DNA from: Podarcis filfolensis
Taxonomy: Eukaryota
Direction: 5' to 3' (one strand)
Length of the DNA: 64,000 nucleotides
NCBI GenBank assembly: GCA_964270895.1
Contig: OZ185435.1
Part shown: one piece after another, positions 41,281 through 54,420 of the stretch
Layout of the letters: each line of letters opens with the position of its first letter
Position numbering within the stretch: position 1 is the first letter of the stretch
Translations under genes and position numbers: made by a program
Notes under the pieces: generated by a model
What the model saw: only the letters and a program-made list of their open reading frames with translations
Told to the model about the DNA's origin: nothing
Databases searched by the model: none

Positions 41281-44200
41281 ATAACTTTTTGCACGTGATG
41301 TAAAGTACACAGCAGCTAGGTAGAGGACCAGGTTGGTCTCCAAGCTAGCACAGGCAGGGTGAAAGCTAGCAGCTGTGTGAAAACAATCTCTCTCCGCACC
41401 ACACAAACCACATACTGTAGTAATTTCTGGCTGCAACAGAAGGTTTTGATCAGCAGAGGGCAGCAAAATACTCAAGCAAAATAGCCAGCGGACAGCACAA
41501 AGAACATGGGTCAGGGCTTGCTTACTTTCAGGCTGAGATTGACTTTCCTATTTAAACCAACTCACCTCTCCTTGAAGGACTTCAAGGAGAAGAGAGGCAA
41601 GGCTGACTGCTTGCATTGAATTGTTCAGAAATGTTGAGGGAGGAGAAAGGGAAATTCTCTCCCCCTTCCTCTTGTGTTTTCACATACTAGTCATTACACA
41701 GATTTGAAGAGGCCTTTCTGTGCATTCCTTAAAAGGGTAGCTGGGAGGCAAGGAGTGTTTCTATTCCATTTATCAAGGTGCAGGGGTCAGTATGAAGGGG
41801 TTGGTTGGAGAAGCCCAGTGGCACAGTAGGCAAAGGCACCCTACCTCCCCCAAAACCAACCAAGCCCTTAGCCATCCTCACCACTGTCCACTCCAACCAC
41901 CAGAGACTTTCTGCTGCATATGGTCAGAATGAGATGCTCCCTTACCATGAGCACTAACCAGCATCCAGAAGCCATTTCCTTTCAGCACCCTGGTTCAGCT
42001 CTATCCATGCCCAATGTGGGTCATTGCAACACAAATTTTACTAATTCAGGAAGTCCACCCCACACTTCATAGAAGCTTTTCTCAGGGATGCTTTACAAGA
42101 TGGGGATAGCTCAGGGGTTCAGCATCTGCTTTGCATAAGGATTTGATCATGGGTGCACCTTCAAGAAGGGCTGGGAGACCCCTCTGAAAACCTTGGAGAG
42201 CTGCTGCCAGTCAGTGTATAACAATAAAACAATGAGCAGAATGGTGATACAATGACTACTGCAATCGACCCAAGATAATATCCTCCTGATGGAAACATGC
42301 AGGTAAGTTTCTATAGAGTGTTTTTGTATTAGTAGGACTGGGGGTATTAACTATGTATGTGCGAATAAACTACTTTTATTCTTGTAGAGGTATCCCTGCT
42401 TTAAGTCATTTACATGCTGTCTTCTCTTGTATATTATTTATTACAAAGGTATGTCTTAATTATGCATTCTCAACGTAATTTAATTTTCCTTATTCTACTT
42501 GTTAATTCAATGCAATTCTGTTACAATTGATTTTGACAGCTCGATGACTAAGCTCTTTATTAGAACCATGTCTGAGCACTGAACCACTGGTATATCACAA
42601 GTGAACTCTTTATTTACTGCGTTTCCAAGATAAAACCTATTTCGGAAGGAAACTACTTTTGCTATTTTGGGGGGCATTTATTGTTTGTTTACAGATAGCG
42701 GCCTTGGTGATATTACCTTGTGTCGATTGCACAGCCAGCCATTGTAGGCAATAGAGCTATAGTGCTGTTCCTAGAGTGAGTGGACCAAGCCTGCATCCTC
42801 TCACTCTTGCCTTGCCTGCACAACCCAAGTCCACCAACCCAACCCATTTCTGAGGATGTGAGGATAGACTGTTCAAACAACCCTTCACAGGAGAAGTCAG
42901 TGCTTATAGAACACGGCATGAATCAGAACAGTGTTAATCTCTTAGGGCTTGGCTGAGCTTACAAACCAAGCAAGTACAACAGGATGTGTTACCGAAGAGG
43001 CAGGGGAGAGACAAGAGGCCACAGTAATGTTGCAGAGCAGTCAAGATGGGAGTGTACGCTCTTCCATGTATACAGATCCCCAGTTCAGCTGAGGAACCCT
43101 TGGCCTTCCAGATGTTGCTGGACCAAACCATCCATCATCTCTGCCCATTGGCCATCCTGGCCGGGGCAAATGTGTAGGACAGTCTTCCATAACCAGGTGC
43201 CCTGCAAATGTTTGGACTACAGCTCCCACCAGCCCCAGCTAGCCAGCATGGCCAATGGGCAGGAATTATGGGAGATGTCATTCAAAAACATCTAGAGGGA
43301 ATCTGGTTGGGGAAAGCTGGTGTACTGAATGTGTATCCAACATCTGAACCCTCCACCTTAAGCCTGAGGTGGTACAAACCAGCAGCAAATACGCCATCTG
43401 CTCACAGTGGGGGGCAAGGCTGGAAAGAAACTCATGTGATAGACTGGAGATGTTGCTGCCTGTGGGGATTTGGTGAAAGGACTTCCTAGGGACTGCAGGT
43501 TTCAGCCTGGGCTTCCTGCTCAGAGGTCAGCTTGAGGGATTAAACAGTATCATTTTCTCCTACCCAGCCTCAGCTTTCAGGGAAATTCTCCCTGTCTGGC
43601 CACCTCTAGCCTTTAATGCTTGCCTTTCAACCAACACCCACTTCCTGCTTCCTTCTCAGTCCCCTTGTTTTCACTACTGTTAACTTGCAGGACTATGGAA
43701 CACTTCTCCCGTGCCTGGCAACTGGACCCGATGCCCCTGTGAGAAATTTCCTGTGATTGGCAGAAACACAAGTGAACACACCCATGGCTGTCATGCCAAC
43801 AGGGTGACTGGCTCCTGCCTTTCCTTAATGGCCTGGTCTTTCCCTGCCTTGGCTCCAAGGCCAGTCATCCAGCGAGACACCCAAAGTGCTAAATTGATCC
43901 CTTGCCATCCAACTCGCCCAGTCTTGGTTTCATGTGGTCAGTGAGGTTTTTAAGACTGCAGTGAAAGATTCATATGGGCACATCACTGTCCAAACCTCCC
44001 TCCCCTCCATGGACGCAAAAAAAGAGAGACAGGAACTCAGGATTCCTATAAAACAAATCTCCTGATTTATACCAAATATATATATATATATTCATATAAA
44101 AGAGCAAAAAAACACAATTTCATTAACTATTTCCGCAAATTATAAAAAGACAAAAAATACAAACACAATTCATGTTGATCGCTGAGATGATCAAAACGTG

Positions 44201-44513
44201 ACTGGGGTCCCGATGCAATTCAGCGGGGAACCCAGCACGGCACCCCATAGAGGGCAGGAAGGCAGATGCTGTTTAGAAACTGGCATCTTGGAATGTAGTA
44301 CAATTATCTTTGGCCCAACCACCAACTGCTTGCAAAATCTGGTGTCGGGGGAGAGGGAAAGAGAAAGAGATGACCAGGTTTTGTGCGGCTGTGTAGAGAA
44401 GACAAGAAAGTTGTGGACATCTCATTCCTCTTTCTGCTCTCCCCCCTATACAGTAAACCCCAACAAAAACAGTGAATGCTGCTATATAGCTGCCTATCTC
44501 TGTCCCACTAGTG

Positions 44514-44637
44514 CAGCCTTCGTCACCTGAAGTCTTCCAGATGTTTTGGACTATCAACTTCCATGGCCATTTTGGCTGGGGGCTGATGGGAGCTGGTAGT
44601 CCAAAATACATGGAAGACTCCAGGTTGATGAAGGCTA
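44514..44637. mobile_element. hAT-type palindromic MITE (related degraded copies near 18.6, 32.9, 37.9, 43.1 and 50.0 kb)
   Basis: Long imperfect inverted arms; 8-bp flanks CACTAGTG / GACTAGAG with a CTAG core. Confidence 0.6.
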
Positions 44638-45037
44638 GACTAGAGAAAACATGAAAATCCCTCCTAAGAGGAGACAATCAGCAGAGGAAGAGAACAAAAT
44701 AGTACCTTTACCACATGTATAAAAGTAAAAAAAAATAGTGTCCCTTTTAGAACCTTTTTTAAAAAAGACACTCGCACACTCACATACATACATACATACA
44801 TACACACACGGAGCTAGACTTCCAAACGTGCCCCTCAGGAGACATGGATGAGGAGGCTTCCATCATTTCCCTTCCTTGCCCTCAACCCAACAAAAATCAG
44901 AGAACATCCTCGTCCCTCCACCCACTCTGTCCGGGCGTTTCCAAACTTCAGGCTAGGAGCAGACATTCACACACTGCCAATTCTCCACAGACACTTCCTG
45001 TTGTCATCTGTGCAGCTGCCCAGTGAGGCCCAGTACT

Positions 45038-45045
45038 TCAGAGGC
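45038..45045 (-). CDS. Candidate terminal coding micro-segment of the connexin (GC CTC TGA) after intron 45046-45681
   Basis: Donor ACTG/GTAAGT at 45682/45681; acceptor TTTTTCCTTCCTTTTTCCAG ending at 45046; the join gives ...ERPTGL-stop. Confidence 0.6.
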
Positions 45046-45673
45046 CTGGAAAAAGGAAGGAAAAACATGTTAGTTTCTCAGTCCAAACCTGCCCTTCACA
45101 AATGTGTTTGTATCCCAAGAAGGGTGGGCTGAGGTCCATCAGTGAAGAAAGCTGTAGGCTGGAGAATGGACAGTGAGCTTAGTTCAGTTCTAGCACTCAG
45201 GACCATTTCCCAGGCTTAGAATTCTTTAATACTGTGTGGATGTGTTTTGTACCTGCCTCTAGGTAGTGGATCTTGGAAGTTCTAGCAAAAAAAAATAGGT
45301 GTGGGTACAGTTTGTCTGTTTTAGGGAATTCCCCAATTGTTCCCCGAGCGTCAAATTTCCTCACTGTTGATGCTTGCTACATCTGGATGCTAATCATCAA
45401 CTTTCACTTTAATCCAGCCTATTTTCTGGTTGTCTCTCTCAAACACATTGCCACGGGGCAGAATCCTTAACCATACTGCACCTTGATGTAATCCTCCACA
45501 AGGCTCACCTCAGAACCTACAGGTGGCAGCGGGAAACCCCAGCCCTCCATTCTACACTAGCAGCTCTTTCAAGCTTAACCAGTCAGCACCAGCTAGACGG
45601 CATCATGATTCTGGCTCTTCCAGACTGCAACAGACAGCCTTTGCTGGCATCCTAGGAAAGCCTAACCCAGGCT

Positions 45674-46828
45674 TCACTTACCAGTCGGTCGCTCACAGGC
45701 TGCGCCTTCCTTCTCATGTGCTGAGTTGAGGCGGTTCTGTTCTGCAGCCAGCCCGTTGGACTCGGGGCTGCTACTACGAGAAGGGCTGGCTGTGTCCTCC
45801 GGCTGCAGGTGGAAGGCCATTTCTAGGTGCTCCTGTGCCATCCGGAGGTGTTTGCGCAGTCGCTCCAACTCATGGCTCGGGACGGTCGGTGCGACAGCAT
45901 AGCGGTCGGCGGCCAGCCCAGCCAAGCTCTCTCCACCGTAGCCCAACTTGTCCTTGGCTACCTGTCTCTTGGAGGTCTCCTTCTTGAGAGAATGGTAGGT
46001 CGGGGGTGCACTGGGATGCTTCTGGACATACTGGGACCTGGGGGGGTCACCACCGTCCTTACTATCAAGGCCGCGTAGGGCATCCCGAATCCCGCCGAAG
46101 CCCAGGTGAAACAGCTCACAGACATTGAGCAGGAGACAAAGGCAGCTCACAGCGTACATGATGAGGAGGAAGATGGTTTTCTCCGTAGGGCGGGAGACAA
46201 AGCAATCCACTGTGTGAGGGCAGGGGCTGCGGGTGCAGACATACGAGGGCATCACCTCGAAGCGGTACAGCACGTACTGCCCCAGCAGGAAGCCCACCTC
46301 AAACACCGAGCGGCACAGCAGCTGTAGCACGTAGGCCGTCATCAGCCCGTCCTTCTTGATGCGCCGGCGGCCGTCGTGCTTCTGGCTGTCGGGCTCCTTC
46401 ACCTCCCTCTCGGGCTCCACCTCCTCAAAGATCATGGGGTCCTCCTCGCCATTGTCCTCCGCCTCCTCGTAGTCGCGGCCTGCGCCGCGGTGCACCACAG
46501 GGGCACGGCTTTTCCGAGGCGGCTGGCGCGAGAGGCGGTGCAACGCAAAGCCCAGGTACATCACCGAGGGCGTGGCTATCATGATGATCTGGAAGATCCA
46601 GAAGCGGACATGCGAAAGCGGGGCAAAGGCATCATAGCAGACGTTTTCACAGCCCGGCTGCTGCGTGTTACACACAAACTTGCTCTGCTCATCATAGTAG
46701 ATGGACTCGCCACCCACCGCTGTCAGGACAATGCGGAAGACAATCAGCACAGTCAGCCACACCTTCCCCACAAAGGTCGAGTGCTGGTTGATCTCCTCAA
46801 GGAGGCGGGTGAGGAAACTCCAGCTCAT
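45674..46828 (-). CDS. Gap junction gamma-class connexin (GJC1/GJC2-like; motifs of the Cx43.4/gjc4 lineage), 384 aa
   Basis: [13 protein letters not shown]-terminus, extracellular loop cysteines ([12 protein letters not shown]; [12 protein letters not shown]), four TM segments. Acceptor GACTGCAG at 46846-46847 gives a 17-nt leader with an in-frame stop. Confidence 0.95.
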
Positions 46829-49800
46829 CTTGGCTCAGCACACGCCTGCAGTCAACAAGCACAGTAGGCAGAAGGTTAAACTGAAGTAATTTCATCCGAT
46901 TTCCCCACAAGCTTCCAAGTGAACTCCCCAAGACCCCACAAGGAGGAACGCACAGTCCCCAGTCCCACAAGATGTCTAAGTTTTTTGTGTGTTTTTTTTT
47001 AAAGTGAAGTCATGGGAGGGAATCACTATTTCTGGTGGTGATGAGAATTGGAAATTTTTGGGGAAACTAACAGAAATTATTATAACTTGGTGGATTAAAG
47101 TGTCCTGTTATATTTGGGAAACGTATCTACATGAAAACCACATCATGTCAATTAAACAATAAATAATACATCCTTGAAAACATTGCCATCTCAAAACAAA
47201 TTTTCTAGTAAGGATCAGTTTCAGACAAATCTAAAGCTTCCTATTCTCAACTTTCATTTTTATCCCCATGGACTTCAGAAAGTTTGCATGGATTGGGGGA
47301 GGGGCGGAACCCTCCTACTGTTTCACTTGTTAGCTTGTTTCTTGACCTGGCACATACCGGTATTTTCTCAAAGACAAATCAAGTTTTGTTTTGTTTTTTT
47401 AAAAAATAACAGCCATAGCCCTTTGCAAACACTCTTCATTCTAAAAGAGAAAAAATATATTAAGGGTTTTTTGCGGGGTTATTGTCAATTTTTCCACTTA
47501 AAAATTGACAAAATCCTCAGGCAGGGGAGAAATGGGGGTTCCCTCCCATTTTCCCATGTAATTATGTAAGAATGAGCTCCACAAAAACCCTGGAGCAGGA
47601 GTGAATCATAGCTTAATTCCACTCACTTTCCACTCACTACATAATGACTTGGCTTTTGCCATCATACCCACGGTGACCTCCAACTGATAATCACATAGCA
47701 CCTACAAAAAGCAACAACTGAGGACCACTTAATAAACTGCTCTTTTAAAGATGTAGATGCCAACTATTTTATGTATATACATACTCAGCATGTGTGCAAC
47801 AAATACATACTTGTAAACACATGGATTATACAGGTAAACAGGCAAGAGAATTCAAGTTTGGAGATGGGTTCTTGCCACGTTTAAATACATACACTTCCTG
47901 CTTACTGTTAGAAAGCCAACCAGTGACTCACAGCCCAATCTTTCCATACCCAAAAAGCACAACACAAGTTTCTAAGACACTTGATTCTCCCCCTCCCATG
48001 TCCGGAGTCAACTCAGGGCCAAACTAGACTCATGTCCGAGAAGCATGAATGCATCTCCCAAACATTTTTTGTGTGTGTGTGCTTGGCCAAAAGCAGCCAC
48101 AGGGGAGACCATTTAGATTTGAAATCCAACATAGGCAGAGGGAGGGAATAAGCCTTTCCCTACACTGTGGTCTTGATCCAAACCACTCACCGCCAGAACC
48201 ATTAGCTGAAAAAGTAAAATGCAGTGTCTGTATGTTCCACCATGGGGTGGGTGGGTGGGTGTGTACTCACAAAATTGCCCCCCCTTTTTAGCCCTACCTT
48301 ATATAAAGTGATGAATTTTACAGCTTGCTGACATCACATTTCCTTTGACCCTCCTCCTGAGAGGAAACCCAATTCTGCTTGACTCATTTCATACACATAT
48401 TATAACAATGACGCACGCACACACACACACAGTGACAAAGCTGAATGGAGATGAGGGCTGGCATGGGATATGAAGCCAAGTATCTGCCTATACTACTCAT
48501 GGGGAGGGTTTATTCTCCCCTGCCTCCTAGGAATACTCCCTGCTGTCAACTTAGCCCTGAGATCAGTGCAGGAGATTTGGCAGAGCAGCTGCTCTGGGAG
48601 TCAACTCAAGAGGCTTGCCTCAACCTTTGGATGGATGCCATGTCCTGGTGCGCCTGGGGCGGGTGTGACGCCCCAATGCTCACATACAATAAGCATCCTG
48701 GAGTAAAGGAGGCACCCCAGCCAGCCCCAGGGTAGAAGTTTGTGCTATGCTCAGCTTCTACAGGGCAAATGTTTAAGGGTGCTCAATCACCTCTGCTTCC
48801 TGTTCCCATCACCATGCCAGGGCTTAGCTAGCGAGGTCCTCCTCCCTCTCTTAGCTGTTTGAACAGTACATGCACAACACACCCACAGGTGCTGAGGCTA
48901 AAGTCATGCAAAGAGAAGCAAAGTGTTTTATTTCTCCAGCATTCACACGCATGCTGTAAGCAGGGGAATAGAATATTGTTTTCCCTCCCAAGCAGAAGAT
49001 TGCATCAGTGATGCCGACAAGGGAATGAAGATTCCCACCCACCCACTTTGCTGTGCTTCCTACACCTGCTATCTCCATTCAGAGGTGGGTATCACTGGAA
49101 GGAAAAAAGCAGAAGCTACTCCAATAGCCGCCTTCTAACGTATGTGGCAGGCGTTTGTTCTGATCAAGGAAATAGTCTGCAATCCCCGACTTCGAGCTGT
49201 AAGGGTAATGCTTCTTAACTAAACCACCAGTACTTTAAAAGTTGTTAGAACTGCAACTTGCAGAACAGCCTTGTGGGGGCAGACATCCTTCTCAGTTATC
49301 CCAAAAGTTGTTCTCTGAACATATTCAAGAGTTCAAAAACCATGAGTGCCACAAGTAGCAACATGGGGAAGAAAAGTTTCCTTGGTTTTCTTTTTCTGCA
49401 GGATATTTCCCATTCCCCAAGTTCATTAGTAGCAATAACTCAATGTGAACTGGAAATAAATATTAGGAAACCGTGGCAATTTCAAGGTTTTTAGCAGGTG
49501 TATACAAGGGAAACAAAACATGCTACATCAGATCACTTCCTAGCATATCAGAAAATTTTCCAAGCCAAAATTTCCTAATGCAAATTCCCCTAATTTTCAT
49601 AGGTTTTCCCAGAACTTTTTCCAGCTCACAATTTTCACTGACCACAAGCATTAGTTTGTTTTCTACTCACATAAAGGAGAAAATGGTTATTTGCACACAA
49701 GCATCTTGTACTCAGTTGACTAAACTGACATAAAAAAGACATGAGAAACAGCCACTAGTGTGCACTGTAAAGCAGTTTCAGAGCACCAGTCAGGACAAAG

Positions 49801-50436
49801 TTACTTCAGTTTAACAACCTTACTCAATCTCCAACCTGCCTGACACACACACTTCAGAGCCTGATAAACTTTAAAGGAGACCTGTGCTCAAGGGAACGCT
49901 GCCATCAAGTCAATTCTTTGCAGCTGAGAGGACTGAATACTTTGCAGGATCGGAAGGTCCACACCCTAGGGAAGGTGGTATGCAATTATCACACAGGTGA
50001 AAGCAGCCTAGACCAGTCTTTTTCAACCTGGAGCCCTCCAGATCTTGGAGACTACAAATCCCATCAGCCCCAACCAGCTAGACAGTTTATGAAAGATTTT
50101 CACCCTTTTCTATAAAACTACCTCTTTATTCGCATTCCCAGCTAACAGCAGAATGCCACAAGGGAGGGCACAGTACATGCACAACTTACACACATTTAAC
50201 TTGTGCACATTCAGTTTTATGCGCGAAGCAACAAACAAACAAACAAAAAAACATTTTTTAAAAGGGAGTGGAAAGGGGGCGGATGTCTCAGAAAAAGAAC
50301 TTGGCCAATCCCACCCATCACTGCACCTAATGTGTTTTGACTATGCACAATTTTGGCTGTACGCACTATCCCAGGAAAATCCCCACTCCTTGAGGGCTTA
50401 CTGTAGTAATCTTAAAAATGAATGGAGGCAGCCTAA

Positions 50437-52879: not shown

Positions 52880-54420
52880 ATCACGGCGCGGTTAATTAAT
52901 CCGCAATCAAGACAGAGTGCTCTTGCCGGCAGCGCAGCGATAAGCTATCGGTGCCCGGAACAATGGGCAGCTCCGGGAGCAAAAAAGATAGCATTACTTA
53001 TCACAAGGAAACCAAATTCCTCGAAATGCATAACGTGAGAATCTACTCTTTGCTCTTCCTCCCTCGCCGGGGCTTGCCTGGAAAACGCTCACATCCAGAA
53101 GCTTAGAGGAATGGGAGGGAAGGCCATGAAGCGAGGATGCTTGCCCTCCTAGCCCTGCGAAACCCTTCGTGTCGCCCCCTCAAATTCCAGCTGCCCCCCA
53201 CCCCAAGTCAGTCACCCAATCACCAAGCCATTTCTCCATTAGCTTCAGAGGGTTTCCGAAGGCTCCACACGACCTGGCGGAGCTCGCCGGGGAAGACGCG
53301 CGCCTAAGGGGACAAGGCAAAAGAGCCCCCAGCCCCAAGCAGCCTCCCCGCCACCCCAGTCCCTCCTCACTTACTGTACTCTCGTCCGGCGGAGCTCACA
53401 AAAGACTCCCGCCCCGCTGCACTCGCTCTTCTCCCGCCCGTCCGAACAAAGGGGCCCCAGACCGTCGCCGCCCCCCGCCCCCTTCGGCCACGCCTTGGGA
53501 GGGACCCCCGCCCCTTTCCCCTCCTCCTCCTCCTCCTCCCGCCTCCCTGCCGGGGGAGAAAAACCCAACGCTGACTACTGTAATGAGAGACGGGGATGGC
53601 GGGCAAAGAGCCCGCGTGTCCGAACGTGTGCATTACACGTCGACACCCATTCTCCTCCCCGGCTGGGGGCGAGGCGGCACACGGTCCGCCTGCCTGCCTT
53701 TCTCCTGCCAGTGGCGCGGAGGAAAACAAACTTTCAGCGCTAGGAGTAGGTCTTCCGAGTTTGGCGGAGCCGAGAGAGAGAAAGACACGGATCCGCGGCC
53801 CGATCCCAGGGACGTGTTTTCTCGGGAGAAAACTCCGCTTACTTCATATATTCGTGAATCCTTGCAGTGGAACTTAAGTTCCAAGGAGCACGGAAACATT
53901 CAGAGATGGGATATCCCTGGATGTGAATCATACCAGCCGCTCGCCGGTACGGACTAAATGATTAAACTTGGGCGGGCGTCACAAGACGAGGAGTCATTGC
54001 AACAATCAGTGAAAGTCCTCCCGAGACATTAATCAGAGGAAATTCGTCTATCATCGTCGTCAAAATGCTTGTATGGTTTGGGCGTCTATCCAGGGTTCCC
54101 CCCACGCCCCGCAAAGCCTTAGGAAACTCTTTCCACTTTTTTAAAAAAAGAAAAAAGCACAGTAAAGTAGTGCGGCTCGGGGCCATTTGCTCCCCGCCCT
54201 CCCCGATTCATTGGTTTGCTTGCCGCCCATTACATTTCCTTACTGCTTAGGCAGAGGCGATCCCTTTTGGATTGCGCGCTGCCCTATCGATAGACGCCTC
54301 GCATCTTAATGGGTGGAACGTGCGCCAAGCTATTGCTTGGAATTTAGTGATGTGGTCGGGCCTTGAACCTCTCCGCCTGCCAGCTTCCCTGGCGCAGCGG
54401 GAAGGGAAAATGAGAGCACC
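52880..54420. promoter_or_regulatory. CpG island / promoter region of the connexin gene
   Basis: Dense CpG and high GC against a CpG-poor background; GC boxes (e.g. GGGCGGGCG near 53970), ATTGG near 54209. Confidence 0.8.
53375..53600 (-). other. Candidate non-coding exon 1 of the connexin gene (5' end uncertain)
   Basis: Donor TACA/GTAAGT at 53375/53374 inside the CpG island; typical connexin layout of a non-coding exon 1 plus a coding exon. Confidence 0.6.

Follow-up and report, generated by a model that had tools for sequence, protein, structure and literature searches.

A conserved terminal intron and a probable leucine-ended C-terminus in a gjc4-type gamma connexin gene of Podarcis filfolensis

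By the textbook rule, the coding region of a connexin gene lies on a single exon, and the C-termini of Cx43, Cx36, Cx45 and Cx47 serve as PDZ ligands that bind ZO-1. According to reviews, a few connexin genes have a coding region that extends over more than one exon (PMC5983588). In GJA10 (mouse Cx57/human Cx62), a small downstream exon provides the true C-terminus, and an apparent unspliced product of that gene vanished after DNase treatment (PMC2984586). Among the gamma-type genes, cx43.4, cx44.2 and ‘gjc1like’ have been placed in a separate orthogroup, gjc4, that is not represented in human or mouse (Mikalsen et al. 2020, PMC7066803; 2021, PMC7914757). Of the connexins expressed in zebrafish embryos, gjc4b/Cx43.4 has the broadest expression (bioRxiv 10.1101/2021.11.19.469275). 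A terminal intron of gjc4 is not discussed in either of the two orthogroup papers (PMC7066803, PMC7914757).

The minus strand of the 64-kb stretch of Podarcis filfolensis DNA analysed here (the window) carries a 384-aa open reading frame at 46828-45674, as read from the window’s ORF translations, whose product is a connexin (Pfam PF00029, residues 2-243, 330 bits against a cut-off of 31.3, E = 9.6e-99). The best database match, a ‘gap junction gamma-1 protein-like’ entry from Podarcis lilfordi (P0001), equals the window ORF in all but the last residue, which is a leucine, and the best 120 protein matches, at 60-100 % identity, come from squamates, turtles, birds, a crocodilian, amphibians, coelacanth and ray-finned fish, with no mammal among them. 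On the basis of these nearest relatives and of intron position, we assign the lizard gene as the probable orthologue of the non-mammalian gamma connexin gjc4 (cx43.4/cx44.2). It shares with that orthogroup the gamma type, nearest relatives of the non-mammalian ‘gjc1-like’ kind, a conserved tail and an intron that in gar falls in the same phase-1 glycine codon; it differs in that the last exon holds 11 coding nt in ray-finned fish, whose proteins end in G-[ILMV]-[RH]-A, and 5 nt in tetrapods, whose proteins end in G-L (or G-I, G-F). The position of the terminal phase-1 intron in a Gly codon was found to be identical in nine orthologous loci including gar, and its use as a gjc4 trait is an observation of our own rather than a published criterion.

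The feature that drew attention to this gene lies at its very end (Table 1). As the sequence-only reading had pointed out, the final ORF codons, ACT GGT AAG TGA (45685-45674), overlap a perfect G/GTAAGT donor, and the very strong acceptor that it had placed 636 nt downstream is likewise present, with a junction that reads tgtttttccttcctttttccag/GCCTCTGA (slash, splice junction), pyrimidines at 19 of the 20 bases upstream and first place among the region’s 71 AGs in a simple ranking. The next exon begins at G45045 and reads GC CTC TGA, so that the spliced codons ACT G/GC CTC TGA give ...ERPTGL and the unspliced ones ...ERPTGK, and we confirm from the sequence that both products have the same length of 384 aa. 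The junction is more than a chance arrangement, given the rank of the acceptor, the branch-site match, the rarity of GGTAAGT (four occurrences on both strands of the 64-kb window) and the presence of the same junction in nine of nine orthologous loci. The lysine codon itself would be supplied by the GTAAGT donor consensus; that a TGA comes directly after it in Podarcis is a coincidence.

Table 1. Coordinates of the connexin gene features in the window
Feature	Position	Strand	Remarks
Main exon	45682..46845	-	17 nt 5' UTR (46845-46829) and 1147 nt coding (ATG 46828 to G45682)
Splice donor GTAAGT	45676..45681	-	phase 1 within the Gly383 codon; exon end G45682
Read-through TGA stop	45674..45676	-	inside the intron; used only without splicing, giving ...TGK
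636-nt intron	45046..45681	-	sole single GT..AG intron that reproduces deposited P0001
CTAAC branch-site match	45069..45073	-	branch A 45070, 24 nt from the acceptor G
Polypyrimidine tract and acceptor AG (45047-45046)	45046..45066	-	rank 1 of 71 AGs; flank aligns to skink genomic DNA
Terminal exon	44090..45045	-	5 coding nt (45045-45041), TGA 45040-45038, 3' UTR; lower bound is a minimum
Alternative acceptor AG	45517..45518	-	rank 8 of 71 AGs, 14 of 20 upstream bases pyrimidines; no support found
Candidate 5'-UTR exon (3' part), tentative	53375..53414	-	followed by GTAAGT donor 53374-53369

The main exon accounts for residues 1-382 together with the opening base of the Gly383 codon, and is preceded by an acceptor (...ttgactgcag) that ends at 46846; a skink transcript (L010) aligns from 46842 up to the exon junction. 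The five coding nucleotides of the terminal exon complete Gly383 and encode Leu384, and the mass calculated for the spliced lizard protein is 43.37 kDa. Downstream of the terminal exon, ATTAAA at 43617-43612 is the only canonical poly(A) hexamer found, so the exon may reach to ~43600; the skink transcripts show a 3' UTR of at least ~950 nt.

Comparison with close relatives places the lizard gene among proteins that already carry the spliced ending. The deposited proteins of Podarcis muralis, P. raffonei, P. lilfordi, Lacerta agilis and Zootoca vivipara all end in ...ERPTGL, and these lacertid ‘gap junction gamma-1 protein-like’ models represent the same protein, with 0-9 substitutions per 384 aa, the same C-terminus and nothing essential that is different. 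At the P. lilfordi locus, whose DNA is ~96.5 % identical to that of the window, the donor and acceptor sequences are identical to the window’s, and the coding exon shows 21 differences, all of them synonymous and in third positions, which argues for a functional gene under purifying selection. Over a longer span, window positions 42111-49857 align to the P. lilfordi locus (L001) at 94-96.5 % identity over ~7.7 kb, with many small indels and an identical connexin, as would suit a congener or a divergent haplotype rather than one and the same assembly.

To place the intron across vertebrates, we sought at each orthologous locus a single GT..AG intron whose removal gives the deposited protein, with the exons joined by a local script, in P. 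lilfordi, Rhineura, Eublepharis, Thamnophis, Tinamus, Alligator, Mauremys, Dendropsophus and Lepisosteus; the comparison thus comprised ten DNA sequences, the window and nine loci, and the deposited Gnomon models that it reproduces are themselves predictions. Exactly one solution was obtained per locus, always in phase 1 in a Gly codon (...ACN G/GTRAG...), and the position that the sequence-only reading had proposed to check in bird, amphibian and fish orthologues was found to be the same in Tinamus, Dendropsophus and gar. Among the ten sequences the shortest intron measures 141 nt (Mauremys) and the longest 3523 nt (Dendropsophus), and CTAAC or a CTRAY variant occurs in most, not all, of the orthologue acceptor flanks. 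At the loci examined, the last exon contributes 5 coding nt and TGA in tetrapods and 11 coding nt and TGA in gar (G-M-R-A). Within the terminal exon the glycine is variously completed as GGC, GGT, GGG or GGA and the leucine encoded as CTC, CTG or TTG while Gly-Leu is retained, and this synonymous variation with unchanged amino acids indicates purifying selection on the spliced product. The deposited models of other squamates, turtles, birds, a crocodilian and amphibians end in (T/S/A)-G-L. On this comparison, bony vertebrates would have inherited the intron from their common ancestor, and we take its age to be ~400 million years.

Two details of the orthologous loci are worth recording in their own right. 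In the turtle Mauremys mutica (L007:1501-2814), the 141-nt terminal intron is a multiple of three and open, so that read-through inserts 47 residues and the product still ends in ...TGL; an entry from Chelydra serpentina (P0029, 418 aa, ...QQDPNVRLLLPTGL) looks like a model in which the intron was translated. The last exon of gar (L009:1501-3602) reads G/GA ATG CGA GCC TGA, i.e. G-M-R-A and a stop, and the tetrapod loci (L001-L008) read G/Gx CTx/TTG TGA. Because the tetrapod stop occupies the position of the fish CGA (Arg), a single C-to-T change (CGA to TGA) could, by inference, have cost the protein its last two residues on the stem lineage of tetrapods.

Transcript contigs bear indirectly on whether the intron is removed. 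The Logan assemblies, in which the ORF calls on contigs do not model introns, contain a skink-type protein (P0131, in a 90 % cluster of Tiliqua scincoides) with an uninterrupted 381-aa ORF that ends in TGL, and this ORF lies on ~1.9-kb contigs from five runs (L010-L014). Aligned to the window, L010, L012 and L014 cover 46842-45671 and then 45046-44693 and 44511-44090, with the predicted intron exactly missing, and many frog, salamander and fish entries that exist only in Logan also end in the spliced form. A read-through member of the same skink cluster, P0132 (...TGKLGLE), comes from a contig of 5.5 kb that consists of collinear genomic DNA, with the 5' acceptor and a 396-nt intron present.

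Read-through versions also circulate in public protein sets. One entry, P0122, is identical to the window’s TGK ORF and is recorded in NCBI/UniRef/nr on a chromosome-size contig; since it is on record, at least one annotation pipeline has emitted the unspliced model, which was possibly derived from an intron-containing transcript assembly. Besides P0122, we noted P0040, P0066, P0006, P0013, P0020-P0022, P0026, P0035 and P0063. Across this set, entries from Podarcis, Hymenochirus and Anomaloglossus end in GK and a stop, and others, from birds, geckos, skinks and frogs, run on into long spurious tails. These entries are annotation noise that stems from the terminal intron, and the public read-through ‘proteins’ are best accounted for by ORF calling on unspliced DNA. 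We considered such database proteins as evidence of intron retention and rejected them, as the one entry that was traced, P0132, proved to lie on a genomic contig.

The sequence-only reading had left two explanations standing for the paired endings, a regulated TGK/TGL switch and, as a fallback, a single-exon ORF prediction that simply gets the C-terminus wrong. The evidence bears out the fallback: lacertid proteins end in TGL, the intron is conserved from lizard to gar and skink transcripts are spliced. Very probably, then, the locus is a gjc4 orthologue made up of a 5'-UTR exon, a large coding exon and a terminal exon, with an ordinary, ancient 636-nt intron and a protein that ends in ...TGL. 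In this gene the 5'-UTR exon would be followed by a single large exon that holds almost all of the coding sequence, and the terminal exon would contribute only the last two bases of Gly383, Leu384, the stop codon and the 3' UTR; the intron would be efficiently recognised, the functional protein would end in ...TGL and the TGK ending would come from a genomic ORF read into the intron. Since the intron is real, the protein would normally end in leucine, and we infer that splicing is the predominant outcome in Podarcis too. The lysine ending is most likely the product of reading DNA without splicing, with no switch involved, and the TGL C-terminus is already known: the feature is ordinary and public annotation has it.

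In a regulated switch, the 636-nt intron would be kept in some tissues or stages and would yield a full-length TGK connexin without the C-terminal hydrophobic residue, with a different 3' UTR and altered scaffold binding. Such a scheme draws on the public TGK entry described above, on the S/T-X-hydrophobic pattern that TGL matches and TGK does not, and on the fact that read-through in Podarcis ends after one codon, so that a retained-intron mRNA would give a stable protein of the same length with no premature-stop problem. The immediate stop, however, is limited to the two Podarcis sequences among the ten compared, and in the other lineages the tails run to 16 to 51 residues and are unrelated by lineage (K and a stop, KHSQGYAF..., ELGWEW..., KCGWGT..., ELGMQR..., ELTPAP..., KMGKRG..., ELDFGI...), with a first residue that is K or E because the donor reads GTAAG or GTGAG. 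As the tails are otherwise long and unrelated, no retained product appears to be under selection, nor is a retained-intron product conserved in the ten sequences. The two frog entries that end in SGK/TGK are a ‘hypothetical protein’ and a ‘LOW QUALITY PROTEIN’ model. Furthermore, the strong donor (GTAAGT), the top-ranked acceptor and the CTAAC match are unlike the signals of typical retained introns, and conservation between squamate families does not extend into the intron interior: lacertid and skink genomic DNA align over only ~20 nt downstream of the donor and ~35 nt upstream of the acceptor, with no alignment across the interior or the region of the alternative acceptor. The sole read-through entry that was traced is genomic, as was the contaminating template behind the analogous ‘unspliced’ GJA10 amplicon (PMC2984586). 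We therefore consider regulated retention very unlikely, and the proposed switch is not supported. Very unlikely, too, is its evolutionary extension, by which a TGA arisen directly after the donor would let an intron-retaining mRNA encode a connexin short of nothing but the terminal Leu, and the Podarcis lineage tune the gjc4 C-terminal ligand and 3' UTR by retention in a way that other vertebrates cannot.

A third isoform had been suggested from the AG at 45518-45517, and the tail reads as claimed: use of this site gives GSEVSLVEDYIKVQYG and a stop. The AG has a moderate pyrimidine tract before it and a frame that is open for 16 codons; against this, it ranks only eighth of the 71 AGs, it lies in the region that does not align to skink DNA, and a comparable tail occurs in no deposited orthologue or Logan contig. 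As a real isoform it is therefore scarcely credible.

With the intron and the leucine ending taken as the preferred reading, there remains the role of the ending itself. The spliced T-G-L fits the class I S/T-X-hydrophobic-COOH motif as a pattern match only, and PDZ binding by TGL is possible. Compared with the connexin PDZ ligands of Cx43, Cx36, Cx45 and Cx47, the gjc4 ending fits the pattern, but its -2 residue varies among gjc4 orthologues, with T/S-G-L retained by most tetrapods. The C-termini among the fetched proteins are TTGL (28), KTGL (14), KSGL (12), PTGL (7), KAGL (6), KSGF (4), TAGL (1) and TTGI (1), and those of ray-finned fish are GIHA (18), GIRA (12), GLRA (9), GMRA (3) and GVRA (2). 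What stays constant is the glycine at the exon junction with a hydrophobic residue after it, rather than Ser/Thr at -2.

It is a serious, if tentative, possibility that the intron and TGL are real and TGL is no PDZ ligand, with the Gly-hydrophobic end serving, for instance, in trafficking or as a phospho-dependent motif, or being kept mainly by constraint at the intron boundary. Alanine at -2 in six anuran entries (KAGL) and one turtle (TAGL), the SGF end of salamanders and the G-[ILMV]-[RH]-A end of ray-finned fish, which falls outside the class I motif, all point this way, and a full-text literature search found no paper linking cx43.4 to PDZ. On the other side, T/S at -2 and Leu at 0 are kept in most sauropsids and many amphibians, and the gamma connexins Cx45 and Cx47 bind ZO-1 through their C-termini.

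The arrangement resembles that of GJA10 in that a nearly complete frame lies on a large exon and a small exon finishes the C-terminus, so that the uninterrupted genomic ORF mispredicts the end. GJA10 differs in belonging to the alpha subfamily and in having an exon of 12 residues that replaces 63, with introns of 4-25 kb, whereas in the lizard gene a single residue and 636 nt are involved; the two terminal exons are analogous, not homologous. In gjc4 connexins the single-exon rule fails by five nucleotides, a caution for annotation, since ORF-based calls then give a wrong last residue or a long spurious tail, and such wrong-ended gjc4 entries sit in public protein sets. The deep conservation of an exon that holds two-thirds of a Gly codon, a Leu codon and a stop is a tidy detail for gjc4/Cx43.4 and marks the extreme C-terminus for partner-binding tests. 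It does not open a new mechanism. The proposed switch draws its only support from a sequence coincidence in Podarcis.

For the 5' end of the gene, homology to the 5' UTR of the skink transcript is limited to two short collinear matches (14 nt and 9 nt), which fall on the correct strand upstream of the gene, within 53375-53414. The matches lie in a GC-rich stretch of the minus strand (53369-53414) in which GTAAGT follows directly. This stretch is probably, if tentatively, the gene’s 5'-UTR exon, ~6.5 kb upstream of the coding exon; with the candidate exon ending at 53375 at a donor, the 5' intron would be ~6.5 kb long. Inside this putative intron, window positions 48523-48709 and 47153-47192 align to a skink genomic contig (L015) at 76 % over 189 nt and 87.5 % over 40 nt, respectively, and the two blocks may represent conserved non-coding elements upstream of the coding exon.
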